From Macrostomum lignano (taxonomy: Eukaryota): a DNA stretch of 64,000 bases. Shown here in pieces: positions 11,901-59,451 of this stretch (position 1 is the stretch's first letter; every line of letters starts with the position of its first letter). The notes beneath the pieces are model-generated. The model was not told the origin of the DNA. It made no database searches and worked only from the letters and a program-made list of their open reading frames with translations. Position numbers and translations under genes: made by a program. Location of the stretch: assembly GCA_002269645.1 (NCBI GenBank), contig NIVC01002232.1, forward strand, positions 62,001-126,000, read 5' to 3'.

Positions 11901-14349
11901 TCACTTTGAATCGATCGAGCAGATGAGACACAACGTGAAAATGATCACCAGCAGCTGAAATTATTGTTAAAATGCAGGAAAAATCAGTTTCAATTTTCAT
12001 ACATGTTGTAATTAATGTGGCAAGAGTACTCGAGGAAAAAAGGCTTACCTGAGCAGCAGCGAACACACCGCAGCCAATGATGACCCATAGCGAGTAGGAA
12101 TCGATGAATGCCACCACTGCGTCCACGCAGCCCTGAAAGCGGTTTCAATTTAACCGTAACTGTGTAGAGAGGCCAGTGAAAGTGACTTTCCACGAGTAAT
12201 TTTAGAAGTCCTACTAAGGGTACGGAGCAGTCAATGTGTCTTTGGTCAATTTCAAGACAGTGAGAATGGAGTCAGGAGATTTCTGTCTGAAGAGTCAGAA
12301 GTGTGGCTATGGAGTCAGGAGTGAGGCTATGGAGTCAGGAGTGAGGCTATGGAGTCAGGAGTGAGGCTATGGAGTCAGGAGTGAGGCTATGGAGTCAGGA
12401 GTGAGGCTATGGAGTCAGGAGTGAGGCTATGGAGTCAGGAGTGAGGCTATGGAGTCAGGAGTGAGGCTATGGAGTCAGGAGTGAGGCTATGGAGTCAGGA
12501 GTGAGGCTATGGAGTCAGGAGTGAGGCTATGGAGTCAGGAGTGAGGCTATGGAGTCAGGAGTGAGGCTATGGAGTCAGGAGAGTGGCTATAGATAAACAG
12601 AGTGTTCAAAAAAGCACGCAAAAATGTTTCCGGTGATTTCAACAATACAGGCTCATATCTGATACGAGCTACACGCGTAAGTATCCACGAGAGAAACAGC
12701 GAGCTTATTGACTTACAACTTGGTGAAATCCAACTTCAGTAACAGGGCAGTCCTGATTCTCAAGGTAGTTTCCCAGGTCCGACCATCGAGTCTGGGTCAA
12801 TAGTTCAGCCTTTTTGTCGCTCTTGACAACGCAACAAGCGGCTGGTACTTTCATATTTGTCTTCACGCCGTTCGTCATTAGCCAGGTGCGGTTTGAAGTG
12901 AGCCAGCTCTCGCTATTGCGGGCGTCTCCCGTCACGTTTACGCCGCAACAGTCCACCTGGAATATAGTAAATGAAGTTGTGAGTTTTGTGCGCGTCTTCT
13001 CATTCTTGTGCCCGTGGTAGCTGATTTCCTATTTTGTCTTTTGACTTCTTCCTGTGTCTTCCTCCTGGGTCACCATTCAGTGTCTCTGCTCTGTCTCTTG
13101 TGTCTCTGCTCTGCCTTCTGTGTCTCTGCTCTGCCTTCTGTGTCTCTGCTCTGCCTTCTGTGTCTCTGCTCTGCCTTCTGTGTCTCTGCTCTGCCTTCTG
13201 TGTCTCTGCTCTGCCTTCTGTGTCTCTGCTCTGCCTTCTGTGTCTCTGCTCTGCCTTCTGTGTCTCTGCTCTGCCTCCTGACTTTCCTACATATCCTGCG
13301 TCTCTCTCTAAAAGTCAGGTTGGGTGTGGGATAAACAAAAAGTGGCACTCACAGCAACAAACATGTAGTTGAATAGCAGACTGACGGCAGTATGTGTCTT
13401 TTTGGTTCCATTGACAAAATCGTTCACGGAGATCAGGTACTTGTTCTGCAGTGCTGACAGCTCGGTTTTGGCCTGGGTGACCACGTTGTTTTTATACAGC
13501 ACAGCTAACACAGCGGCCGCCACCTGGGCTCCCAGAATTGCGATGATGAAACCGGCATACTGCGGATGAAGGAGGTATTAGTCATGACTTTTGATTGTCA
13601 TCTGGCTGCATCTGATGTCAAATGGTCAGCATCAGGTATCAAATGGTCAGCATCAGATATCAAATGGTCAGCATCAGATATCAAATGGTCAGCATCAGGT
13701 ATCAAATGGTCAGCATCAGACATCAAAAGGTCAGCATCAGGTATCAAATGGTCAGCATCAGGTATCAAATGGTCAGCATCAGACATCAAATGGTCCGCAT
13801 CAGGTATCAAATGGTCAGCATCAGACATCAAATGGTCAGCATCAGGTATCAAATGGTCAGCATCAGATATCAAATGGTCAGCATCAGACATCAAAAGGTC
13901 AGCATCAGGTATCAAATGGTCAGCATCAGACATCAAATAATCTGAAGCTGGTATGGTTAGGACATTAGAAAGTCAAACGGTCAGACTATATGTGTCAGAT
14001 ACTAGTGTCAGCAAAACTCTCTCTGACTCACGATGCCCAGCAGGCACTTCGACTGTCGCACAGCTCCCAGACATCCGAACAGGCTGATGAAGGCGCTGAG
14101 GGCGCCAACAGCAATAAGGATGGCGCCAGCGGTCGACACGATGCCTTTTTGACCGGAGAGTCTGAGCAGCTCGCTCTCAACTTCCGGATTGTTTCCAGCC
14201 TGCTGGTTGATGAGGTTCAACATGTTGAACAGCTTGTCCTGACTGACCAGCATCCAGATGCCGGCAGACAGCAGGGCCAGGCCAACCAAGAAGAACACGA
14301 TGGTGAACACGAACAGGGTGATCGAAGCGAGCTTGCTGCCGCAACCCAT
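11901..14349 (-). CDS. Tetraspanin, 300 aa, 5 coding exons
   Basis: Exons (minus) 14349-14032, 13559-13353, 12956-12717, 12132-12049, 11954-11901; all introns GT-AG, phase 0. Four hydrophobic segments, GCLGA motif after TM2, EC2 with CCG, PAACC, DCP and GC (6 Cys). Ends LLVIIFTLCLICSIDSK*. Confidence 0.95.
12303..12590. repeat. 20-bp tandem repeat (gtgaggctatggagtcagga), about 14 copies, tetraspanin intron 3
   Basis: Near-perfect tandem units read directly. Confidence 0.95.
13080..13276. repeat. 20-bp tandem repeat (tgtgtctctgctctgccttc), about 10 copies, tetraspanin intron 2
   Basis: Read directly; explains the SVSLLCLLCLCSAF ORF artefacts. Confidence 0.95.
13611..13938. repeat. 21-bp tandem repeat (atcaaatggtcagcatcaggt), about 15 copies, tetraspanin intron 1
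   Basis: Read directly; the 7-aa periodic ORFs on both strands are artefacts. Confidence 0.95.
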
Positions 14350-15141: not shown

Positions 15142-16035
15142 ACGAGCTATAAGCGCGGGGTTGCATTGGCTTCATCTTATCGCTGTTGGGACAAAGCGGA
15201 GGTCCAAGACGTCGCACGCAGAGCAGCGAATGCTTGCCTCTATCTCTGAGTAGACAAAACCAGTGCGGTTGACGCATTAAAAAACAAGTCCCAATCAAAT
15301 GACTCAACGATTCTTAATATAAAAAAAGAATTTTCCGGAAAGTTTCTTTTAGAACATGTGTTTGTTTAGTTTGTTGCCTTGGGTTTTAGGCACTTTAAAA
15401 TAGCTCATACGGTCGTATTGTGTGAGGAATGTTATGATTAGTTCTCTAGATACTAGACCTGAATAAGATGGGTTACTTTGAGCACGGGCCGGAGACAACT
15501 CTTGATTCAATAGCAACACGCATACACGCATACATTTACCCATCGGAAAATCAATACGCTAAATTTGAAAAAAATTCCTTGATATATTCAAGCAAAAATA
15601 GTCAAATTAAGCAAATTTATCTAGTAAGACGCGAGCAGCCTACTAGATGAATAGTAGTAACATTAGGTTCAAATATTTGTCGTCTGCTTATTTGTTTAAT
15701 TTGAATTATCAATTTGAATTAATGAATTAATGAGTTTCAGACATCGAGCAGTTGAATTCAGACTTTGGACTCAGAACAATCAAACAAAAATGGTGTATAT
15801 TGCACTCTTGGGCAGCCGTGATGACATCCGCGCCTAACTCCGCGATTCTCTGCAGCACCACGGAACGCCAATCCTGTAGATAGGATGGAACGCTACATTT
15901 GGTTCTGCCAAAAAACTTCAACTAAAATTAGTAAGCAAGGCCTAAAATGCATTCCGGGTTTCGAATTGGAACATAGACGCTTATTTTGCACTAGTAGTTC
16001 GACCGATTCTTTAACAATCTAGTGAGCATTAGCAG

Positions 16036-16776
16036 GAAGCGGACGCCAAGTTAAAGCAACTCTTCAACTGCTCAGTAAGCCGATGCAGCGGAGAAGGCAC
16101 CGGCATGAGTACCAAAGCTGCTAAGGGCGCGAAGGACGTTAAAGACGCCAAAAAAGACGCTAAAAAGGACGCAAAAGACGCAAAGAAAGATGCCAAAAAT
16201 GATGCTAAAAAGGATGCTAAGGATTCCAAAAAGGACGCTAAGAAAGACGTCAAGGACGCCAAGAAGGACGCAAAGGACGCTAAGAAGGACGCAAAGGACG
16301 CTAAGAAGGACGCAAAGGACACTAAGAAGGACGCAAAGGACGCAAAGGACGCAAAGGACGCTAAGAAGGACGCAAAGGACGCAAAGGACGCTAAGAAGGA
16401 CACAAAGGACGCAAAGGATGCTAAGAAGGACGCAAAGGACGCAAAGGACGCAAAGGACGCAAAGGACGCCAAGAATGACGCAAAGGACGCCAAGAAGGAC
16501 GCAAAGGACGTTAAAAAGGACGCAAAGGACGCCAAGAATGACGCAAAGGACGCGAAGAAAGACGCAAAGGACGTTAAGAAGGACGCAAAAGACGCAAAGG
16601 ACGTTAAGAAGGACGCAAAGGACGCAAAAGACGCAAAGGACGTTAAGAAGGACGCAAAGAACGCAAAAGACGCCAAGAAGGACGCCAAAGATGCAAAGAA
16701 GGGAGCAGCAGCAGATGGTAGCGCACTGCCTTCAGACAGCACCCATGCCATCCGGTTTTATAACATCATTAAGTGA
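16036..16776 (+). CDS. Terminal exon of a Lys-Asp-Ala repeat (cylicin-like composition) protein; 5' exons unresolved
   Basis: Acceptor tagcag at 16035 is in frame: EADAKLKQLFNCSVSRCSGEGTG-MSTKAAK...(KDA/KKDA)n...RFYNIIK*. Synonymous codon variation (gac/gat, aaa/aag, gca/gcc/gct) with conserved amino acids, unlike the non-coding arrays. A candidate 51-nt phase-0 exon (IGWNATFGSAKKLQLKL) lies at about 15880-15930. Confidence 0.7.
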   Translation, partial: EADAKLKQLFNCSVSRCSGEGTGMSTKAAKGAKDVKDAKKDAKKDAKDAKKDAKNDAKKDAKDSKKDAKKDVKDAKKDAKDAKKDAKDAKKDAKDTKKDAKDAKDAKDAKKDAKDAKDAKKDTKDAKDAKKDAKDAKDAKDAKDAKNDAKDAKKDAKDVKKDAKDAKNDAKDAKKDAKDVKKDAKDAKDVKKDAKDAKDAKDVKKDAKNAKDAKKDAKDAKKGAAADGSALPSDSTHAIRFYNIIK

Positions 16777-17134
16777 TACTCGGTGACAAGGAACGATAAT
16801 GGCTCTTTTAGCCGCGCAGTTATTTCTGTAAAAAATGGACGCTTCTCTTGCTTTTGATTTCAATTTTAAGGGAAAGACTTACGCAAAATATATTTTTGCG
16901 TTTTGATGGCTATGGTCCATCCAATCTTTTAGTTCCGTGTTCGATGGTGAGTACATCTGAGAATTTCTAAATGAGTAAATCTTGATTTTTCTGGTTTTTT
17001 TAATTTTGACAAGTCGGAACTTACTGAGCTTCGAGCCCAAGTCGCTCTCTTTGACCAGCCATGGAATTCCAAGCTCAGAAAGCTATTCTATCTTTTTTCT
17101 GCACACTTGACTGTCTCATGTCCTGCACCTGTTA

Positions 17135-18229: not shown

Positions 18230-21200
18230 ATGTCCTACTCATATTCCAACGGGCGCGCCAGCGTCCTCGACATGCGGAGCAGCAGCGCAGCTTCCGTCGC
18301 AAACGGCATAGCCCCAGCCTTGGTCGCACGCTCGAGCACGTCAATGGTATCCAGCGCTAACTCGGACACAAAGGGCCGCATCCAGGTGATTCTGGACACC
18401 CAGACGGCCTGCAGACAGGCGCTTGAGGTGGCCAAAATGCTGGCAGTGATCAGCATTCCGGTGATTGCGGCTCTGTCCATTGGCACTGTCGGTTTGACGA
18501 GGGCATCGAGCACGTTCTCGCAGAGTCAGCGGGCTCAGGTGTCACTTACAGGTGAGTTTGAGATCTGCTGGCAATCTTATCGATTAAATAATGTATATCT
18601 GTAATACTCAAAGATCCGATCAAGTCGTCTTTCTTCGCGAAGGACTTACTTGACTTTGCTGCAGGGGATGCTCCGGGCATCCGGGTGCAGCGGGGAGGCG
18701 TCACCGCCCATTCGGCTGACCCCTGACAACCACGGGCAGCTGCGGTGTCGGGCAGGGAGGTCCAGGACTGCCGGAGAGTCCAGGAGAGGCGAAGAGGCGG
18801 TTGGTTGCTCATCCGGTAGGCCTTAGGTAGCTAGCCGGAAAAGAGATTCGGATTGAAAGCAGGGCATTCACAGATGAAGCGCTCAACACCGAAGAGGCAG
18901 AATGGGCGATGCCATTGACCTGAGACCATCATCGCGGCTATCGCCCTGATGCCCTTGCGGTTGAATCCAAGCAGGACCCAGGCGGGAGAGTGACAGGGAA
19001 CGCATGGGGTTTTGCCATAAACAAAAATTCACTCGAGAAAATTCCGATTAGGCGTCCGCATCCTTGTACTTCAAATGTTCATACGTGCAGTCGTCATGAA
19101 GGGTGATTAATTCAAAGCATCATTCAATAGGGAGCGCCATTTCATTTTTTGCCCGATACCGCGCAGCCTTCTAATTCTTAATATTCTCAATTCTCAAAAT
19201 GCTCACTCCACTTCTCAGGCAACATGGACATGAGCAAACTGGTCGGCAGCCTGCAGATCGAGCGCGGCCTGACGGCAACCTTCCTGGCCTCGAACGGCAC
19301 CGACATGGTCTTTTATCAGCGCATCAAAAATCAACGAGTTATTTCGGATGCCGCTCTTGAGGGCATGAGCATCTGGCCTCCCATTGAGTACTTTTACTAT
19401 AGCAACACCAGCAGCGGTTATACTGTGCCCATCAGGCCGCTCTACACCAAAGCTGACATGGCCGCCAACCTGGCTTGGTTCCGGCGTCGAGTCGACACCA
19501 TGTGAGTTCCTTAATATGGGGTGAGATTGTGACATGCTGAGATCATCATCACTTGGGGTGAGATTGTGAGATGCTGAGATCATCATCACTTGGGGTGAGA
19601 TTGTGAGACCATCATCACTTGGGGTGAGATTGTGAGACCATCACCACTTGGGGTGAGATTGTGACATGCTGAGATCATCATCACTTGGGGTGAGATTGTG
19701 AGATGCTGAGATCATCATCACTTGGGGTGAGATTGTGAGACCATCATCACTTGGGGTGAGATTGTGAGATGCTGAGATCATCATCACTTGGGGTGAGATT
19801 GTGAGACCATCATCACTTGGGGTGAGATTGTGAGACCATCACCACTTGGGGTGAGATTGTGAGATGCTGAGATCATCGTCACTTGGGGTGAGATTGTGAG
19901 ATGCTGAGATCATCATCACTTGGGGTGAGATTGTGAGACCATTATCACTTGGGGCGAGATTCTGAGACCATCACCACTTGGGGTGAGATTGTGAGACCAC
20001 ACCACTTGGGGTGAGATTGTGAGACCACACCACTTGGGGTGAGATTGTGAGATCATCGTCACTTGGGGTGAGATTGTGAGATGCTGAGATCATCATCACT
20101 TGGGGTGAGATTGTGAGATCATCGTCACTTGGGGTGAGATTGTGAGATGCTGGGATCATCATCACTTGGGGTGAGATTGCGAGATGCTGAGATCATCATC
20201 ACTTGGGGTGAGATTGTGAGACCATTATCACTTGGGGCGAGATTCTGAGACCATCACCACTTGGGGTGAGATTGTGAGACCACACCACTTGGGTTGAGAT
20301 TGTGAGATCATCGTCACTTGGGGTGAGATTGTGAGATGCTGAGATCATCATCACTTGGGGTGAGATTGTGAGACCATCATCACTTGGGGTGAGATTGTGA
20401 GACCATCATCACTTGGGGTGAGATTGTGAGATAATCGTCACTTGGGGTGAGATTGTGAGATCATCACCACTTGGGGTGAGATTGTGAGATGCTGGGATCA
20501 TCATCACTTGGGGTGAGATTGTGAGACCACACCACTTGGGGTGAGATTGTGAGATCATCATCACTTGGGGTGAGATTGTGAGACCATCATCACTTGGGGT
20601 GAGATTGTGAGATCATCATCACTTGAGATGAGATTTTGAGATTCTGAGACCATCATCCGTCGGGGTGCGTTTCTAAGAAAGCAAAAACACAAGTGAGATA
20701 ATTATTAAAGAATTAATTCTTAGAGATGAAAGTTTTTTATGACGTTCTTTTTCGCAAAGAAAACTATTGAACCTTCCTCATTTCAGTGCTTACGAAATGC
20801 AAACGATTGACTCGCCGGACTTTTACACTCCCTTCATCAACATGCTGATGGACTGGGGCGACAGCACCGCCATTTTCCCTCCGGGCAGCAAGCTCTGGAC
20901 TCAAATGCTGGCCTTTTCAGCCATTCTGCGAGTCACCGAGGCTATCGGACTGCAGCGAGCCCTGGGCTCGTCTTGGTTCATCAACTGCCACCTGCCGCCC
21001 GAACTTTTCAGGGTGGGTTTTGATAGGCCAGCATGCGGTAGCCGAACTCATTTATTTAAAACGTTTACGAGACTGTGCAGTCAGAATTAAATTATTTTAT
21101 TGCACGTCACTTCGGAATATACATTCTTTAATTACCCTACCATAGACTGTACATTCGGAAAGAAATCTTCCTACCCCACAACGGGGATGTACATTCGGAA

Positions 21201-24200
21201 AGAAATCTTCCTACCCCACAACGGGGATGTACATTCGGAAAGAAATCTTCCTACCCAAAACGGGATGTACATTCGGAATCTTCCTACCCCACAACGGGTT
21301 GTATATTCGGAAAGAAATATAATTACAATAATTAAATTTACACGATAAAAAATAATCTTGAATAATACTGAAGCAACCCTCAATTCACCCGCAGTACTTT
21401 CTGCGCCTCTACGGAACTCAACTAACTGAGTACGACATTGGCAGGGGCTACTGCGCCTCTTGCATCAGCGAGTTTGAGACAATTTACACGAACACCGCCA
21501 ATTTAGACAGCAATTTAACATTGAAACGGACAATGATGCTGAACAGCAGCTTCATCGATTATTGCAACACACAGGAGCAGCAATTCCGAAGCGTGCTTGC
21601 TCAGGGCTGGTTTGACAATACTACTGTGCTCATAAATCTCTTCGTTCGGGTGAGTATAATATGCAGACATGCCTGGTTTGGTGCCTTGATAGAAAAAACA
21701 CGATGTTGGGGGTGCCAGTTCGTCAGGGCCGCGAGGTGGCACTCCATTGAAGGTCCCGAAGGTCACCTGTATGTCTACAGGTCAGCCTAGAGGGTCGCCA
21801 TCGTCCATTTCATTCACCGATTATGTCTACTGACTGAATGCTGCATGCAGACGAGGATTCTTCCATTTCTGTTTTGGGAACACAGCCGTCTCTGAGATGC
21901 CGATCGGGTGCTTTTGTTGAAGGTCCCGACGGTCGCCGCCAATGCTCCAGACGGTGATGAAGGGACCCTGGTGCCTGGGATGCTGAGAGCAAAAGTCCCT
22001 GTGACTGATACGCACAGTTTGTTTAGCCGACGTGGTTTCATGATGAGATTTCTTGAGCAGAAAAATTTTGCCAATATTGGTGGTTTTTGCCACCAGACAC
22101 CCCGAGGAGAATCGTTGAATATTTCAACGATGCCGATTTTTCGTGATTCTCGAAGTTGCTTCATCGAATAGAGCGGAAAATTTTAGCCCGTGTTTTGGAT
22201 TTTCATGGCAATTGGTTGAATATTTTTGGAGATCCAGACAAAGGGAGAATGTGTGTATTTGAAATACACCCAATAGGTCTTTCTGCTGTTAATAGAAATT
22301 TCTAGCTGCAGCTGCTGGCCTAATTACTTCAGTAGACATCGGATTTGCCTATTCTAATAAGGAATCTTAATCTAGAAAATAATTACAGGCAAAAACACTC
22401 AGCAGGAAATAAAGTTCTACTGCTAAAGAAGACGAACGATGCTCATTGAGCTGATCCGGTTAATTAAGGAGCTTTGAGTTAATTAAAATGCAACTCAGCT
22501 TATTGATTATTACATTCAAGTTCGAAGCGCACGTTTAATCCCTAGAGAATTAGAGGTTGCTTAATTAGAAGACCCACTATGCACGCCATACGCAGGTGCG
22601 GAACTCCGTCTCGGACTCGATAGTCAATCAGCTCAAAGCTTCTGTTAACGAGGCCAGAATGAACTTAATCGTGTTCTCCACTTTGTTCATCATCGTGACG
22701 ATTCTATGCGTCAGTCTCACCGTGTGGTACGCCTCCACCATCAGAGCCATGGGCCAGATGATTCTCACCTATGCCGTAAAACTGCGAAAGAAAATCAAAG
22801 CGTTGCAGGTGAGAGATGGCTTCTGCCAGTTACATGTATAATGTAATCAGGGTGTGATTGCAGTAAGCGAATTAATTCATAAAACATGGAATCTCAAGCA
22901 TTAATACCTAGTTTATCCACTACTTCTGCATTGGAATACCAAAACTTTCTGATGATCCCATCTCCAATCCTGAGATCCCATCTCTAATCCCGAGATCCTA
23001 TCTCCAATCTCGAGATCCCATTTCTAATCCTGAGATCCCATCTCTATCCTGAGATCCCATCTCCAATCCCGAGATCCCATCTCCAATTCCGAAATCCCAT
23101 CTCCAATCCCAGATCCCATCTTCAATCTTCAATCTTCAATCTTCAATCTTTAATCTTCAATCCTGAGATCCCATCTTCAATCTTGAGATCCTATCTCCAA
23201 TCTCGAGATCCCATTTCTAATCCTGAGATCCCATCTCAAATCCCGAGATCCCATCTTCAATCCTGAGATCCCATCTCCAATCCTGAGATCCCATCTTCAA
23301 TCCTGAGATCCTATCTCCAATCTCGAGATCCCATTTCTAATCCTGAGATCCCATCTCAAATCCCGAGATCCCATCTTCAATTCTGAGATCCCATCTCCAA
23401 TCCTGAGATCCCATCTCAAATCCCGAGATCCCATCTTCAAACCTAAGCTCCCATCTCCAATCCCGAGATCGAATCTTCAATCTCGAGATCCCATCTTCAA
23501 TTCTGAGATCCCATCTCCAATCCTGAGATCCCATCTCAAATCCCGAGATCCCATCTTCAAACCTAAGCTCCCATCTCCAATCCCGAGATCGAATCTTCAA
23601 TCTCGAGATCCCATCTTCAATCCTGAGATCCTATCTCCAATCTCGAGATCCCATCTCCAATCCCGAGATCCCATTTCCAGTCCCGAGATCCCATTTCCAG
23701 TCCCGAGATCCCATTTCCAATCCCGAGATCCCATTTCCAGTCCCGAGATCCGAACTGTAAACTTGCAGTTCAGAACTTCAATGATAGACACAATCGCGAC
23801 CAAGAAGATGAAGTCAAAGAGTTTATGAAGGTAAATGAGCCAAACTGACTCGCACGTCCCCGCAGGTAGAGAAGAAGCGCACAGAGACGCTGCTGTTCCA
23901 GATGCTGCCTCGGACGGTGGCGGACCAGCTAACCAAGGGCCTCACGGTGGAACCTGAGACGTTCCAATGCGTCAGCATCTACTTCAGCGACATCGTCAGC
24001 TTCACCGTGATCTCGTCAAGCATCTCACCGATGGAGGTTATCGACCTGCTCAATAGTCTCTACTCGTAAGCCTTGTATGAGATCTCGCTTGGGATTCGGG
24101 ATCTCGGGATTGGAAATGGGATCTCGGGATTGGAGATGGGATCTCGGATTGGAGATGGGAGTTTAGGATTGAAGGGGATCTCGGGATTTGAGATGGGATC

Positions 24201-43583: not shown

Positions 43584-46217
<2,634 letters not shown>

Positions 46218-52900: not shown

Positions 52901-55900
52901 TGTATTTCAGTATGTATGTTGTGCTAATTCTCATTGGCAACAAGGTCCTAGTAAATCTAGTAGGCCTACTGCTTGAATAGTATACACAGGGATTGTGTAA
53001 AGTTTTTTGGCATGCACTATGCAGTGGTACATACTAAATTCTTTTGACATGTACCACTGTCAAATGTCAAAGCCACTGTGCATACAGTTTCATTGAAACA
53101 ACATGATATTTTAATAAATTTCATTGTATCTCTACCAGTCTCTATGTAGGCCTAGTCTAAGTTTTATCTTTAATGTTCCTCTCCCCTAGTTTTTTGGTGT
53201 ATATACCATCTGCATGCAGGGTGCAAAGCAAAATAATCTTATGTTCATAATGTATACTTTGCACTATCTATGGGCTATATTTGGCCCTACCTAGTGTTAG
53301 AATCATGTACTGATGTATGCCAGAACAAGATTTGCTTCCCCAGCTCCTGTATACCAAATGACTTATATTGCATATAAAAATATGCCAAGAAAAAAACTGA
53401 ATTTATAGTTTTAATGATAAAAGTTATTAAAAACTTTTAGAAATGTACCTAGTTGTTTTTTATATTTAAGTCGCTGTTAGATAAAATGGCTTAGTGGCGA
53501 AGTGCATTTAAACTAAGCACTAATCAAAGTTTTTCATTTCAATTTCTTAGGTAGCTGATTGGACTGGAAATATCTATCAGGACAAGCGCTACCAGAGTAA
53601 GTTAAAATTTCAATCATTTTACTAAGATTATTCAAAGTATAGCTATGACATAATTGGATAATTACCTCAAACAACAGACCGCTACATGTCGCACCTGGCC
53701 AACTCTGGCGGCACCCAGTACACCTACTATCACGAGGAAGACGAGAGCAGCTTTGTACTAGTTGACACACAGAAGACTCAGCCTAGACTGAACCCTAGGC
53801 AGCGATTCCAGCGTATTAACAATGCCCAGCGGCAGAGGCGCGAACGGCAGCGCTTCAGCATGGCCGGCGCTACTGGCTTGGCCAATCAGCAGCTGTCCAA
53901 GGCGCAACTGCGAATGAAGCAGCAATACCAGAAGAAATGGCTGAAGCAGACGCGCCAGAACCAGGAGTACCAGCGCCGGCCGCAGCGGGCCGTTAATCGC
54001 GAATCGTCCGTGCAAGTGCAAGAGTCCTGGAAAGTGCTAGAAGAGCTGGACTTTGTTCGCTTGTCTAAACTGTCCGTGCCGTTGAACATTGTCACCTCTG
54101 GCGAAGACTTGTACGCCTGCGGAGAGATGGAATACTATGATAAGACCTACGACAGGTGAGACTGTAGTGAGGCGTCTAATTAAGGTATAGATAAAGGCAG
54201 CTCAATCCAATGAGTGACTCATAGTGAGATAGTGGAGTTCACTAAGTGACTGTCACTGATAGCTGAGTTCACTGAGTGACTATCACTGACAGCTGAGTTC
54301 ACCGAGTGACTGTCACTGATAGCTGAGTACACTAAGTGACTGTCACTGATAGCTGAGTCCACTGAGTGACTGTCACTAATAGCTGAGTACACTGAGTGAC
54401 TGTCACTAATAGCTGAGTCCACCGAGTGACTGTCACTAATAGCTGAGTACACTGAGTGACTGTCACTAATAGCTGAGTTCACTGAGTGACTGTCACTGAT
54501 AGCTGAGTCCACTGAGTGACTGTCACTGATAGCTGAGTCCACCGAGTGACTGTCACTAATAGCTGAGTATACACTGAGTGACTGTCACTAATAGCTGAGT
54601 TCACTGAGTGACTGTCACTGATAGCTGAGTCACTGAGTGACTGTCACTGATAGCTGAGTCCACTGAGTGACTGTCACTGATAGCTGAGTCCACTGAGTGA
54701 CTGTCACTGACAGCTGAGTCCACCGAGTGACTGTCACTAATAGCTGAGTCCAATGAGTGACTGTCACTGATAGCTGAGTCCACTGAGTGACTGTCACTGA
54801 TAGCTGAGTCCACTGAGTGACTGTCACTGATAGCTGAGTCCACTGAGTGACTGTCACTGATAGCTGAGTCCACTGAGTGACTGTCACTGATAGCTGAGTC
54901 CACTGAGTGACTGTCACTGAAAGCTGATAGAGTGACTGTCACTGATAGCTGAGTTCACCGAGTGACTGTCACTGATAGCTGAGTCACCGAGTGACTGTCA
55001 CTAATAGCTGAGTCACTGAGTGACTGTCACTAATAGCTGAGTTCACAGAGTGATTCACTAATAGCTGAGTCACTGAGTGACTGTCACTATAGCTGAGTTC
55101 ACTGAGTGACTGTCACTAATAGCTGAGTTCACTGAGTGATTATCACTGATAGGTAGCTGAGTTCACTGAGTGACTGTCACTGATAGCTGAGTTCACTGAG
55201 TGACTGTCACTAATAGCTGAGTCCACTGAGTGACTGTCACTAATAGCTGAGTTCACAGAGTGACTGTCACTGATAGCTGAGTTCACTGAGTGACTGTCAC
55301 TGATAGCTGAGTCCACTGAGTGACTGTCACTGATAGCTGAGTCCACTGAGTGACTGTCACTGATAGCTGAGTCCACTGAGTGACTGTCACTGATAGCTGA
55401 GTCCACTGAGTGACTGTCACTGAAAGCACTGATAGAGTGACTGTCACTGATAGCTGAGTTCACCGAGTGACTGTCACTGATAGCTGAGTTCACCGAGTGA
55501 CTGTCACTAATAGCTGAGTCCACTGAGTGACTGTCACTAATAGCTGAGTCCACTGAGTGACTGTCACTAATAGCTGAGTTCACAGAGTGATTATCACTGA
55601 TAGGTAGCTGAGTTCACTGAGTGACTGTCACTGATAGCTGAGTTCACTGAGTGACTGTCACTAATAGCTGAGTCCACTGAGTGACTGTCACTAATAGCTG
55701 AGTTCACAGAGTGACTGTCACTGATAGCTGAGTTCACTGAGTGACTGTCACTAATAGCTGAGTCCACTGAGTGACTGTCACTGATAGCTGAGTTCACAGA
55801 GTGACTGTCACTGATAGCTGAGTTCACAGAGTGACTGTCACTGATAGCTGAGTTCACAGAGTGACTGTCACTAATAGCTGAGTCCACTGAGTGACTGTCA

Positions 55901-58900
55901 CTAATAGCTGAGTCCACTGAGTGACTGTCACTGATAGCTGAGTTCACAGAGTGACTGTCACTGATAGCTGAGTTCACAGAGTGACTGTCACTGATAGCTG
56001 AGTTCACAGAGTGACTGTCACTGATAGCTGAGTTCACAGAGTGACTGTCACTGATAGCTGAGTTCACAGAGTGACTGTCACTAATAGCTGAGTCCACTGA
56101 GTGACTGTCACTAATAGCTGAGTCCACTGAGTGACTGTCACTGATAGCTGAGTTCACAGAGTGACTGTCACTGATAGCTGAGTTCACAGAGTGACTGTCA
56201 CTGATAGCTGAGTTCACAGAGTCGCTCCAACACTCCAACTGTTATCAGCCGCACAAAATCGCACAATTCTGCAGAGTGTCCACCAAGTCGGAGCGCAAGC
56301 TGCAGCGCGTCAATCGGGTGATCCACACGGTCACCACCACGCTGGATCCGGTTATCCGCAAGCTGGCCAAAGAGCGCAAAGGCAACGTGTTCGTCACTGA
56401 CAGCATCCTGGCCACTCTGATGTGCTGCACTCGCAGCCACTACAGCTGGGACATTGTGGTGCAGAAACTCGGCGACACTCTGTTCTTTGACAAACGCGAA
56501 GGCAGCGACTTCGATCTGTTGACTGTACACGAGACCGCTGCCGACCAGACCCTTGACGATTCGGCTAACGGACTGAATTCGGCTAAGAACCTGGCTCTGG
56601 AGGCCACCTTCATCAACCACAACTTTAGCCAGCAGGTGTTGCGCAACGGTGACAAGAAATTCTCATTCGACAATAAGAATCCTTTCGTTGAGGACGAGGA
56701 AGAGGAGGCGGAAGTGGCCAGCGTTGGCTATCGCTACCGGTCCTGGAACCTCGGCGGAGACAAACTCAACCTTGTGGTCCGCTGCGAGCACGACGCCGTT
56801 ACTCAGGTTTGTTCAGCTTGCGTGTGTTTTTCCGATTGGATTGTTTTAACAAACCTTCGGGACCTTCATATCGTCTTGTATCAGAAGTTCTCAGTGTCGG
56901 CAGCATGAAGAAGTTTTCGCTGTCTTGATTCTGAAGTTTTAATTGTCTCGATCCTGAAGTTTTAATTGTCTTAATTCTGAAGTTTTAGTTGTCTCGGTCC
57001 TGAAGTTTTCGCTGTCTCAATCCTTAAGTTTTAGCTGTCTCAATCCTGAAGTTTCAATTTTCTCAATCCTGAAGTTTTAGCTGTCTCTATACTGAAGTTT
57101 TAGCTGTCTCAATCCTGAAGTTTTAGCTGTCTCAATCCTTAAGTTTTAGCTGTCTCAATCCTGAAGTTTTAGCTGTCTCAATCCTTAAGTTTTAGCTGTC
57201 TCTATCCTGAAGTTTCAATTGTCTCTATCCTGAAGTTTCAATTGTCTCTATCCTGAAGTTTTAGCTGTCTCAATCCTGAAGTTTTAGCTGTCTCAATCCT
57301 GAAGTTTTAGCTGTCTCAATCCTTAAGTTTTAGCTGTCTCTATCCTGAAGTTTTAGCTGTCTCAATCCTTCAAGTTTTAGCTGTCTCAATTCTGAAGTTT
57401 TAGCTGTCTCAATCCTGAAGTTTTAGCTGTCTCAATCCTTCAAGTTTTAGCTGTCTCTATCCTGAAGTTTTAGCTGTCTCAATCCTGAAGTTTTAGCTGT
57501 CTCAATCCTTAAGTTTTAGCTGTCTCAATCCTGAAGTTTTAGCTGTCTCAATCCTTAAGTTTTAGCTGTCTCTATCCTGAAGTTTCAATTGTCTCTATCC
57601 TGAAGTTTCAATTGTCTCTATCCTGAAGTTTTAGCTGTCTCAATCCTGAAGTTTTAGCTGTCTCAATCCTGAAGTTTTAGCTGTCTCAATCCTGAAGTTT
57701 TAGCTGTCTCAATCCTTAAGTTTTAGCTGTCTCTATCCTGAAGTTTTAGCTGTCTCAATCCTTCAAGTTTTAGCTGTCTCAATTCTGAAGTTTTAGCTGT
57801 CTCAATCCTGAAGTTTAAGCTGTCTCAATCCTTCAAGTTTTAGCTGTCTCTATCCTGAAGTTTTAGCTGTCTCAATCCTGAAGTTTTAGCTGTCTCAATC
57901 CTGAAGTTTTAGCTGTCTCAATCCTTAAGTTTTAGCTGTCTCTATCCTGAAGTTTTAGCTGTCTCAATCCTGAAGTTTTAGCTGTCTCAATCCTGAAGTT
58001 TTAGCTGTCTCAATCCTGAAGTTTTAGCTGTCTCAATCCTGAAGTTTTAGCTGTCTCAATCCTGAAGTTTCAATTGTCTTAATCCTGAAGTTTTAGCTGT
58101 GTCGATCCTGAAGTTTTAGCTGTCTCAATCCTGAAGTTTTAGCTGTCTCAATCCTTAAGTTTTAGCTGTCTCAATCCTGAAGTTTTAGCTGTCTCAATCC
58201 TGAAGTTTTAGCTGTCTCAATCCTGAAGTTTTAGCTGTCTCAATCCTGAAGTTTTAGCTGTCTCAATCCTGAAGTTTTAGCTGTCTCAATCCTGAAGTTT
58301 TAGCTGTCTCAATCCTGAAGTTTTAGCTGTCTCAATCCTGAAGTTTTAGCTGTCTCAATCCTTCAAGTTTTAGCTGTCTCAATCCTGAAGTTTTAGCTGT
58401 CTCAATCCTGAAGTTTTAGCTGTCTCAATCCTGAAGTTTTAGCTGTCTCTATCCTGAAGTTTTAGCTGTCTCTATCCTGAAGTTTCAATTGTCTTAATCC
58501 TGAAGTTTTAGCTGTGTCGATCCTGAAGATTTAGTTGTCTCGATCCTGAAGTTTCAGTTGTCGATCTTGAAGTTTTCGCTGTCTCGATTCTGAAGTTTTA
58601 ATTGTCTCAATTCTGAAGTTTTAGCTGTCTCCATCCTGAACTTTTTGCTGTCTCATCTTGAAGTTTTAATTGTCTTAATTCTAAAGTTTTTTTAGTTGTC
58701 CCGATCCTGAAGTTTAACTGTCTCGATCCTGAACTTTTAGCTTTCTCGATCCTAAAGTTTTCGCTGTCTTAATCCTGAATTTTTTTTGTCTCGATCCTGA
58801 AGTTTTAGTCGATAAGCGCATCCCCAAGGCACAGAGAGTGTACCTGCCTGATGATTAGAAAGTCAGGGCCACTGTAAACCCTGTGTGAGCGTCTGTAGGA

Positions 58901-59451
58901 GTGCGTGCTGTGTACAGTAGTAACCAAACCCACTTCAGGGCCCCAACGAGGAGGTGCAGTTCATAAACATCAAAGCTCTGAACGAGTTCGACCCGCGCGT
59001 GCCGGGCGCCGTTGACTGGCGCAGCAAGATGGACTCGCAGCGGGGAGCCGTGCTGGCCGCCGAGCTTAAGAACAACGCCTTCAAGCTGGCCAAGTGGACG
59101 GTCTGCTCGCTGTTGGCCGGCTCAGACCAGCTCAAGCTGGGCTACGTGTCCCGCGTGAACCCCAAGGACTCCAGCAAGCACGTGATCCTGGGCACCCAGC
59201 AGTTCAAGCCGAACGAGTTCGCCTCCCAGATCAATCTGTCCATGGAGAACTGCTGGGGCATTTTCAAGTGCTTGGTGAACACCCTGATGGACAGGCCCAA
59301 CGGCAAGTACCTGGTGTTGAAGGATCCCAACAAGCAGATGATTCGGCTGTACGACATTCCTAACAACTCCTTCGAGTCGGACGACGAGGACGAAGAAGGC
59401 GACGACGGCCAAGACGAGGACGACGAGCGCGACGGCGACGGCAGCGATTGA
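49971..59451 (+). CDS. EIF3D: Eukaryotic translation initiation factor 3 subunit D, 569 aa, 5 exons
   Basis: Exons 49971-50111, 53551-53596, 53678-54155, 56275-56806, 58939-59451; GT-AG, phases match, total 1710 nt. Motifs [66 protein letters not shown]; acidic tail. Confidence 0.97.
50552..51075 (-). pseudogene. Mariner transposase fossil (N-terminal half) in eIF3d intron 1
   Basis: Minus strand with stops and frameshifts: [13 protein letters not shown]..., [57 protein letters not shown]. WVPHxL and DETW...YDPETK are mariner signature motifs. Confidence 0.88.
51654..51713 (-). pseudogene. Second mariner 5' fragment (start of transposase)
   Basis: [19 protein letters not shown]; shares tgcacYtgaaatcatagt with the first copy (about 51025-51042). 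Confidence 0.6.
54212..56222. repeat. 30-bp minisatellite (actgagtgactgtcactgatagctgagtcc), about 65 copies, eIF3d intron 3
   Basis: Read directly; each unit holds the inverted repeat agtgac-t-gtcact. Confidence 0.97.
56930..58810. repeat. 23-bp minisatellite (atcctgaagttttagctgtctca), about 80 copies, eIF3d intron 4
   Basis: Read directly; degenerate at both ends, homogeneous in the middle. Confidence 0.97.

Follow-up and report, generated by a model that had tools for sequence, protein, structure and literature searches.

A NIT-domain guanylyl cyclase gene of Macrostomum lignano with substitutions on one face of its catalytic site

Guanylyl cyclases (GCs) that carry a NIT (nitrate/nitrite-sensing) domain came to attention in 2006, when proteins of insects and sea urchins combining a NIT domain, a signalling helix (S-helix) and a cyclase domain were predicted to be extracellular receptors for nitrogen oxides (Anantharaman, Balaji, Aravind, PMC1592074). 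The resulting NIT-GC family is present in placozoans as well as in many bilaterians (Moroz et al. 2020, PMC7400543). It has also been reported from most animal phyla, with 15 copies in the annelid Platynereis (Jokura et al., eLife 2023; 10.1101/2023.08.02.551600), and cells given Platynereis NIT-GC1 produce cyclic GMP (cGMP) after exposure to a nitric oxide (NO) donor only when the NIT domain is present (Jokura et al., 10.1101/2023.08.02.551600). Flatworms go unmentioned in the main texts of Moroz et al. 2020 and Jokura et al. 2023. Here we describe a NIT-GC gene on the plus strand of contig NIVC01002232.1 from the flatworm Macrostomum lignano, within a stretch of 64 kb that we call the window; all coordinates given below are positions within it. 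The architecture of the encoded protein (the window protein) is not in itself new, as the gene is a further member of an established family. An initial annotation of the locus correctly pointed to the placozoan and Platynereis proteins as its kin, but the family is better known than that annotation implied, given that its existence was predicted in 2006. Of greater importance than the addition of one further family member is the pattern seen in the catalytic site. The window protein retains one face of this site and has lost the other, and we estimate a probability of roughly 0.55-0.6 that it serves as the alpha-like subunit of a heterodimer.

Class III nucleotide cyclases dimerize head to tail, and both subunits contribute residues to each active site. 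In the guanylyl cyclase CYG12, monomer A contributes Asp482 and Asp527 for metal binding and Arg571 for the triphosphate, whereas monomer B contributes Asn599 for the ribose, Arg603 for the transition state and Lys640 for the triphosphate (Winger et al. 2008, PMC2576301). The same paper holds the last three, Asn, Arg and Lys, to be necessary and to be conserved across adenylyl and guanylyl cyclases (PMC2576301). We took residue roles and spacing from CYG12 D482/D527/R571/N599/R603/K640 (PMC2576301), and the corresponding residues of the window protein, D475/D519/R566/H594/C598/Q635, have the same spacing. Face A is intact, with metal-binding D475 (23989-23991) and D519 (24711-24713) and the triphosphate arginine R566 in place. 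All three residues of face B are replaced: the ribose Asn by H594 (25859-25861), the transition-state Arg by C598 (25871-25873) and the Lys of the beta7-beta8 loop by Q635 (26060-26062), such that the KGKG of this loop reads QEKK. The six nearest full-length relatives carry CLFGDTVNTA[SA]RMES and VKGKG in these two regions; the window protein differs in the first motif and has VQEKK in place of the second. The complete two-face set of two Asp, Arg, Asn, Arg and Lys is consequently not found in this protein. The residues that select guanine, E515 (KVETIGD) and C587 (PRYCLFG), are both kept, the latter being present in 78 of the 80 sequences of the comparison set described below, and this pair marks the cyclase as one of predicted guanylyl type. 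A homodimer would have two crippled sites, because the Asn, Arg and Lys that each subunit should lend to the other are all replaced. The guanylyl cyclase called by the initial annotation is present as a domain and is of the guanylyl type, but the changes to H594, C598 and Q635 make it unlikely that the protein is a self-sufficient enzyme.

For comparison with the wider family, a profile of six full-length NIT-GCs was searched (HMMER) against 1.84 billion representative proteins. The 79 representatives that span both the NIT and the cyclase domains, plus the window protein, were aligned to this profile and form a comparison set of 80 sequences. Each sequence was classified at five core catalytic positions, and the KGK loop was scored separately. 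Conservation among the 52 canonical members reaches at least 95% in 53 alignment columns, of which the window protein retains 45. Of the eight lost columns, five hold the Asn, the Arg and the K, G and G residues of the KGKG loop, and the remaining three carry the conservative changes Y to F, D to E and I to V. Judged from this alignment, degeneration is targeted to one catalytic face and is not general, and we rejected general decay as an explanation because the losses are confined to that face. We also rejected the possibility that Q635 results from an error in our splice model. The junction of exons 10 and 11 falls at an intron position conserved in a gene of the nemertean Lineus longissimus, and an in-frame TAG lies directly before exon 11. 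Furthermore, tblastn searches of the 64-kb window with the product and five relatives as queries found no alternative, canonical version of exon 9. Given that H594 and C598 are located in the middle of exon 9, that the exon 10/11 junction is conserved and that there is no alternative exon, the substitutions are not splice artefacts.

The losses in the window protein belong to a pattern that extends through the family. Canonical residues at the five core positions are present in 52 of the 80 sequences, and the KGK loop is kept in 46 of these 52. Another 14 sequences, including the window gene, keep face A and have lost the Asn and/or the Arg, and the loop is kept in 1 of the 14. The converse is observed for 10 sequences, wherein face A is lost and Asn/Arg are kept, and all 10 retain the loop (10/10). 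Both faces are lost in the final 4, and none of these keeps the loop (0/4). Loss of Asn/Arg is associated with loss of the lysine loop (Fisher p=5.6e-6, 80 sequences).

These two complementary loss classes resemble the two halves of soluble GC (sGC) and of membrane adenylyl cyclase (AC). The sGC alpha subunit, the C1 half of membrane AC and the chytrid RGC/NeoR system are like the window protein in that the metal Asp is kept while the Asn/Arg/Lys face is lost in one subunit, which leaves their dimers with a single catalytic pocket next to a degenerate one. These systems differ in their sensors, which are haem H-NOX domains, bundles of six transmembrane (TM) helices and rhodopsin, respectively, and share only the class III cyclase domain with the window protein. 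Moreover, heterodimerization has been demonstrated experimentally for sGC, AC and RGC/NeoR, whereas for the window protein we infer it from sequence. Published treatments of the family regard NIT-GCs as uniform cyclases and discuss neither degeneracy nor heterodimer classes (PMC7400543, PMC1592074). We see about even odds that NIT-GCs include matched alpha-like subunits, which have lost the Asn/Arg/Lys face, and beta-like subunits, which have lost the metal-Asp face, and that these form obligate heterodimers.

A neighbour-joining tree (518 columns, 100 bootstraps) places the window protein inside the spiralian NIT-GC clade as the sister of L. longissimus XP_064641408.1 (P0167), with a bootstrap value of 95/100. 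This protein also has the highest NIT-domain identity to the window protein (29%; 36% overall). Its gene shares four intron positions with the window gene in the cyclase part, and we consider the cyclase half of our splice model to be supported because of this match. The N-terminal half of the Lineus gene, in contrast, contains far fewer introns than that of the window gene. The Lineus protein has lost the same pair of catalytic residues, although by different replacements, with Asn changed to Leu and Arg to Tyr where the window protein has His and Cys, and its KGKG reads KGQK. Because the sister protein shows the same kind of loss, the catalytic change is probably older than the split of the two lineages, with both genes having been retained in intact form since then.

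Both degenerate classes can be found within one species, as in Lineus (three plus one) and Tubulanus (one plus two). A particularly close arrangement is present in Paramacrobiotus metropolitanus (BHEN01000144.1, 3763-15811), where two NIT-GC genes with complementary defects are positioned head to tail and 1.2 kb apart. The upstream gene lacks the Asn, the Arg and KGKG, and the downstream gene lacks the first metal Asp. In the model of the upstream gene, approximately 10 residues around its own first Asp are also missing, possibly through a gap in the annotation.

The gene itself was modelled by setting exon borders manually and joining the exons by reading frame and GT-AG sites. This yields an 11-exon gene on the plus strand (18230-27079) that codes for 648 amino acids followed by TGA, in a single open frame and with GT-AG borders at every intron (Table 1). 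An in-frame stop is located just 5' of the start of the exon 1 open reading frame (ORF), which reaches back only to 18212. Each exon was matched exactly once in the window by tblastn with the product and five relatives as queries. The interval to which the gene was originally assigned, 18230-22808, holds exons 1-5, which do splice in frame, but it covers only the N-terminal two-thirds of the gene, and the cyclase is encoded at 23866-27079.

Pfam searches with the spliced product recover the NIT domain at 82.7 bits (E=7e-23; model positions 1-238 of 239), where the gathering cut-off for PF08376 is 24.9 bits. The C-terminal segment of HNOBA (model positions 183-216 of 216, E=2.5e-6) and the class III cyclase domain PF00211 (E=1.7e-60) are also matched. 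Kyte-Doolittle hydropathy, calculated in 19-residue windows, gives exactly two membrane-spanning candidates in the whole protein. The NIT domain had first been read from short peptides, which we locate at residues 119-130 (exon 2), 253-262 (exon 3) and 349-354 (WFDNTT, exon 4). This reading is borne out, far beyond chance, by the full-length Pfam match, and the domain does lie between the two hydrophobic segments. The helix preceding the cyclase resembles the sGC beta1 coiled-coil entry 3HLS and the linker of GC-A (the S-helix concept is set out in PMC1592074). The nearest solved structure for the cyclase part is the cyclase domain of the natriuretic-peptide receptor GC-A (E=3.9e-69), and similarity to receptor GCs of the natriuretic type is confined to residues 426-647, which constitute the cyclase third of the protein.

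No Pfam match to Pkinase (PF07714/PF00069), ANF_receptor (PF01094) or the haem-binding HNOB (H-NOX) domain was obtained with the spliced product, and of HNOBA only the C-terminal helix was matched. The protein accordingly belongs neither to the natriuretic-peptide-type receptor GCs (GC-A to GC-G, Gyc32E) nor, having two TM segments, to the sGCs. The stretch of about 50 residues between TM2 and the cyclase leaves no room for a kinase-homology domain. The cyclase follows directly on the NIT domain and TM2, as the initial annotation had described.

The closest full-length relatives belong to a bivalve (Solemya), a brachiopod (Lingula), an annelid (Paralvinella), two echinoderms (Amphiura and Diadema) and a tardigrade (Paramacrobiotus), and share 30-38% identity with the query over 82-94% of its length. 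All six carry PF08376 and PF00211, and they are annotated merely as hypothetical proteins or as generic guanylate cyclases. A word-indexed search with the N-terminal 451 residues alone returned no matches, the NIT part being too divergent for the index. Given full-length relatives that combine NIT and cyclase domains, and a position nested in the spiralian NIT-GC clade, membership of the window protein in the animal NIT-GC family, as originally suggested, is in our judgement close to certain.

Platynereis dumerilii NIT-GC1 and NIT-GC2 are similar to the window protein in comprising a membrane-anchored NIT domain and a GC without a kinase-homology domain, and in belonging to the spiralian radiation. 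Platynereis NIT-GC1 is active alone, whereas the window protein is without the Asn/Arg/Lys of one face; this comparison draws on the published description. Placozoan and other metazoan NIT-GCs likewise have two TM helices flanking the NIT domain, a C-terminal cyclase and two conserved arginines at the bundle interface, and they have been proposed to sense nitrogen oxides outside the cell (PMC7400543, PMC1592074).

When the window NIT domain and 10 relatives were combined into an ectodomain profile, this convincingly matched a single known structure, that of the nitrate sensor NasR (4AKK; E=5.6e-12 over approximately 250 residues). By homology to 4AKK, the domain is expected to adopt a fold of two four-helix bundles. 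In the alignment, R123 (LQIERG; codon 19263-19265) corresponds to chain residue R77, and Q258/R259 (GLQRALG; R259 codon 20956-20958) to chain residues E202/R203. R123 is conserved in 73 and R259 in 57 of the 80 family members. Assuming a 27-residue offset of the deposited chain, these chain positions would equate to NasR R50 and E175/R176. R50 is reported to be a conserved arginine of a pocket helix (Boudes et al. 2012). E175 and R176 are predicted residues of the nitrate pocket (PMC7496416). Klebsiella NasR and the window NIT domain have the helix motifs ERG and QRALG/ERALG, with their arginines, in common. However, NasR acts in the cytoplasm as a soluble one-component regulator whose output is RNA binding by an ANTAR domain, whereas the window domain is predicted to be extracytosolic, bears sequons and a probable disulfide, and would signal across a membrane to a cyclase.

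The orientation of the domain follows from topology. Since the cyclase has to reside in the cytosol and the NIT domain is flanked by two TM segments, we infer from this N-in/C-in arrangement that the NIT ectodomain faces outward. The initial annotation had favoured an extracellular NIT domain on the basis of N-glycosylation sequons, and the additional observations agree. All five sequons (NGT133, NTS170, NLT317, NSS327 and NTT352) are located between the TM helices and none occurs in the other approximately 300 residues, which taken alone is weak evidence. Across the 80 family members, sequons occur at a density of 1.59 per 100 residues in the ectodomain versus 0.36 in the cytosolic part, a 4.5-fold enrichment, and 51 of the 80 share the N352-x-T354 sequon, which lies within the conserved motif WFxNxT. 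In addition, C269 and C334 co-vary, with both present in 15 relatives, neither in 63 and a single one in 2, although these counts are inflated by shared ancestry. This pattern is probably the signature of a disulfide.

The ectodomain also contains a CxxC motif (GYCASCISE, C297/C300) encoded by exon 4 (21395-21649) that is present in none of the 79 relatives. These cysteines could be joined in a further disulfide or could serve as a pair that is reactive towards NO or redox changes.

With these features in mind, we propose the following mechanism. The window protein would be a two-TM receptor with a type II anchor and an outward-facing NIT ectodomain. By homology to NasR, this ectodomain may bind nitrate, nitrite or NO-derived species, with R123 and R259 predicted to lie on the pocket helices. 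The ligand signal would be relayed through TM2 and the signalling helix of approximately 35 residues to a dimeric class III cyclase. In this dimer the window protein would be the alpha/C1-like subunit of an asymmetric pair and contribute the metal site. The Asn, Arg and Lys would come, together with the base-selecting pair, from the partner, which could be either a second NIT-GC or some other receptor GC. The heterodimer would have one catalytic site and one degenerate pocket, and the latter, which keeps E515/C587, could bind GTP as a regulator. Heterodimeric GCs that combine an active with a regulatory site have a precedent in chytrid RGC/NeoR, for which regulatory binding of GTP by the degenerate pocket has been proposed (PMC12264004).

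Other interpretations deserve consideration. The protein might be an ordinary homodimeric NIT-GC that makes cGMP by itself upon encountering NO, nitrite or nitrate, as Platynereis NIT-GC1 does alone in response to an NO donor. The domain architecture is complete and intact, and E515/C587 and both metal aspartates are retained, all of which would suit such an enzyme. We nevertheless consider this improbable, since a homodimer would have to operate with the ribose Asn, the transition-state Arg and the loop Lys all replaced, and since 52 of the 79 relatives, the six closest full-length homologs among them, carry the canonical catalytic set. The same three replacements would be expected if the protein were instead a catalytically dead pseudo-cyclase that takes part in no active site and instead provides a scaffold, binds ligand as a decoy or regulates other receptor cyclases in a dominant-negative manner, and fully dead copies probably do exist in the family, as 4 of the 80 members have losses on both faces. 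Yet D475, D519, R566 and 45 of the 53 conserved columns would not be expected to persist if catalysis were irrelevant. The existence of the complementary class, wherein side A is lost but KGK is always kept, also argues for two classes that cooperate. We regard a pseudo-cyclase role as no more probable than self-sufficiency.

We judge it less probable still that the gene is unexpressed or a recently inactivated pseudogene whose substitutions are the first signs of decay. In favour of this reading, each key replacement is a single nucleotide away from the canonical codon (AAC to CAC, CGC to TGC and AAG to CAG), and the introns are packed with minisatellites. Against this, the 648-codon ORF extends over 11 exons without a stop or frameshift, all splice sites are canonical, the losses are restricted to one functional face, and the nemertean sister gene has the same type of loss and is likewise intact.

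A heterodimeric, alpha-like role thus remains the interpretation that we favour, but several points weigh against it and should be borne in mind. The 64-kb window holds no second cyclase gene, as judged by tblastn with the product and five relatives over the 18 kb upstream and 37 kb downstream. There is also no cyclase neighbour within 10 kb of the Lineus sister or of the degenerate Owenia and Tubulanus genes that were checked, such that tandem pairing is seen at one of the four loci examined. The representatives in the NIT-GC set derive from automated gene prediction, and in one, P0188, a gap covers the first Asp. The grouping of the window and Lineus proteins could be inflated by long-branch attraction. 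On sequence grounds, a His/Cys variant may have residual activity. Catalytic degeneracy and heterodimer classes of NIT-GCs are not discussed in the literature that we searched, which accordingly offers no independent support. Finally, NO, nitrite and nitrate are all candidate ligands even for the Platynereis enzyme (10.1101/2023.08.02.551600).

Table 1. Features of the NIT-GC gene and its introns (window positions)
Feature	Positions	Strand	Remarks
Exon 1	18230-18551	+	
Exon 2	19219-19501	+	
Exon 3	20787-21012	+	
Exon 4	21395-21649	+	
Exon 5	22596-22808	+	
Exon 6	23866-24065	+	200 nt; end of signalling helix and metal-binding D475
Exon 7	24656-24765	+	
Exon 8	25616-25720	+	
Exon 9	25794-25892	+	holds H594 and C598
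Exon 10	25971-26062	+	final codon is Q635
Exon 11	27038-27079	+	TGA stop at 27077-27079
AATAAA hexamer resembling a polyadenylation signal	27118-27123	+	39 nt past the stop; read from sequence
Ser-rich cytosolic N-terminal tail, residues 1-66	18230-18427	+	from translation; tail length differs among relatives
TM helix 1, residues ~67-90	18428-18499	+	hydropathy up to 2.25; aligns with a hydrophobic segment of all relatives
NIT sensor domain, residues 114-371	19236-22622	+	introns included; exons 2-5; Pfam PF08376
TM helix 2, residues ~384-410	22659-22739	+	hydropathy up to 2.66; followed by basic KLRKKIK, which fits the positive-inside rule
Signalling helix/coiled-coil linker, residues 422-455	22773-23931	+	across the exon 5/6 junction; Pfam HNOBA C-terminal segment
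Class III nucleotide cyclase, guanylyl type, residues 462-646	23950-27070	+	exons 6-11; Pfam PF00211
Intronic array	19517-20657		periods 29/66/152 bp
Intronic array	21148-21318		period 40 bp
Intronic array	24843-25558		periods 14/28 bp
Intronic array	26219-26961		period 15 bp

Minisatellites make up most of the intronic DNA of this gene. Tandem-repeat arrays are present in six of the ten introns, which include all of the long ones except intron 1, and their periods are mostly 14-40 bp. The four arrays at 19517-20657, 21148-21318, 24843-25558 and 26219-26961 reach copy numbers of up to approximately 50. A 20-bp minisatellite, GATCCCATCTCCAATCCCGA, fills both intron 5 (22954-23751) and intron 6 (24098-24535), in opposite orientations. 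The 200-nt exon 6 (23866-24065) is therefore flanked by inverted arms of approximately 400 nt that are about 81% complementary, and pairing of these arms in the pre-mRNA could favour skipping or back-splicing of the exon. A telomere-type interstitial array, (TTAGGG) x 58, is located at 27808-28156, approximately 730 bp past the stop codon, and a short run of the same repeat occurs within intron 6 (24560-24590). Many metazoans have this TTAGGG repeat type, whereas arthropods have TTAGG and nematodes TTAGGC; its presence does not identify a phylum.

Among the other genes in the window is one for eIF3 subunit D (53686-59451, plus strand), of which at least three large exons match Pfam eIF-3_zeta with E-values down to 6.6e-77. 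Its best database identity is 67%, to gastropods, with values of 64-66% to molluscs, annelids, nemerteans, arthropods and deuterostomes and 64% to Lineus eIF3d, a value too low for Lineus to be a close relative of the source; there is no flatworm among the best 120 matches. Taken by itself, this distribution speaks neither for nor against a flatworm origin. Exon-sized ORFs at 14008-14349 (minus), 34744-35199 (plus) and 44761-46090 (minus) match Tetraspanin (E=4e-14), Endosulfine/ARPP-19 (E=2.5e-8) and, weakly and below the Pfam cut-offs, FYVE and PH, and probably represent three further genes. The last of these is interrupted by a long repeat of the (CAGA/GTCT)n type, which is read as runs of DRQT or VCLS. 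A low-complexity repeat of approximately 700 bp (16029-16786) translates as (KDAKKDA)n on the plus strand and (ASFASFL)n on the minus strand. No Pfam family matches it, and it is probably not a gene but a microsatellite that looks like coding sequence.

Apart from NIT-GCs, animals have to our knowledge no known candidates for sensing NO or its oxidation products outside the cell, and only one NIT-GC has been tested functionally. If the family does include matched alpha-like and beta-like subunits, the window gene would be the first alpha-like NIT-GC subunit recognized as such, and animals would have built an enzyme with one active and one regulatory site, in the style of sGC, a second time, now with a sensor for extracellular nitrogen oxides as its base. 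Should about a third of NIT-GCs be complementary half-enzymes, assays that express a single gene, and likewise knock-downs, would be misleading. The choice of partner would then constitute a layer of regulation, and the degenerate pocket would be a likely allosteric site, as in sGC and RGC/NeoR.

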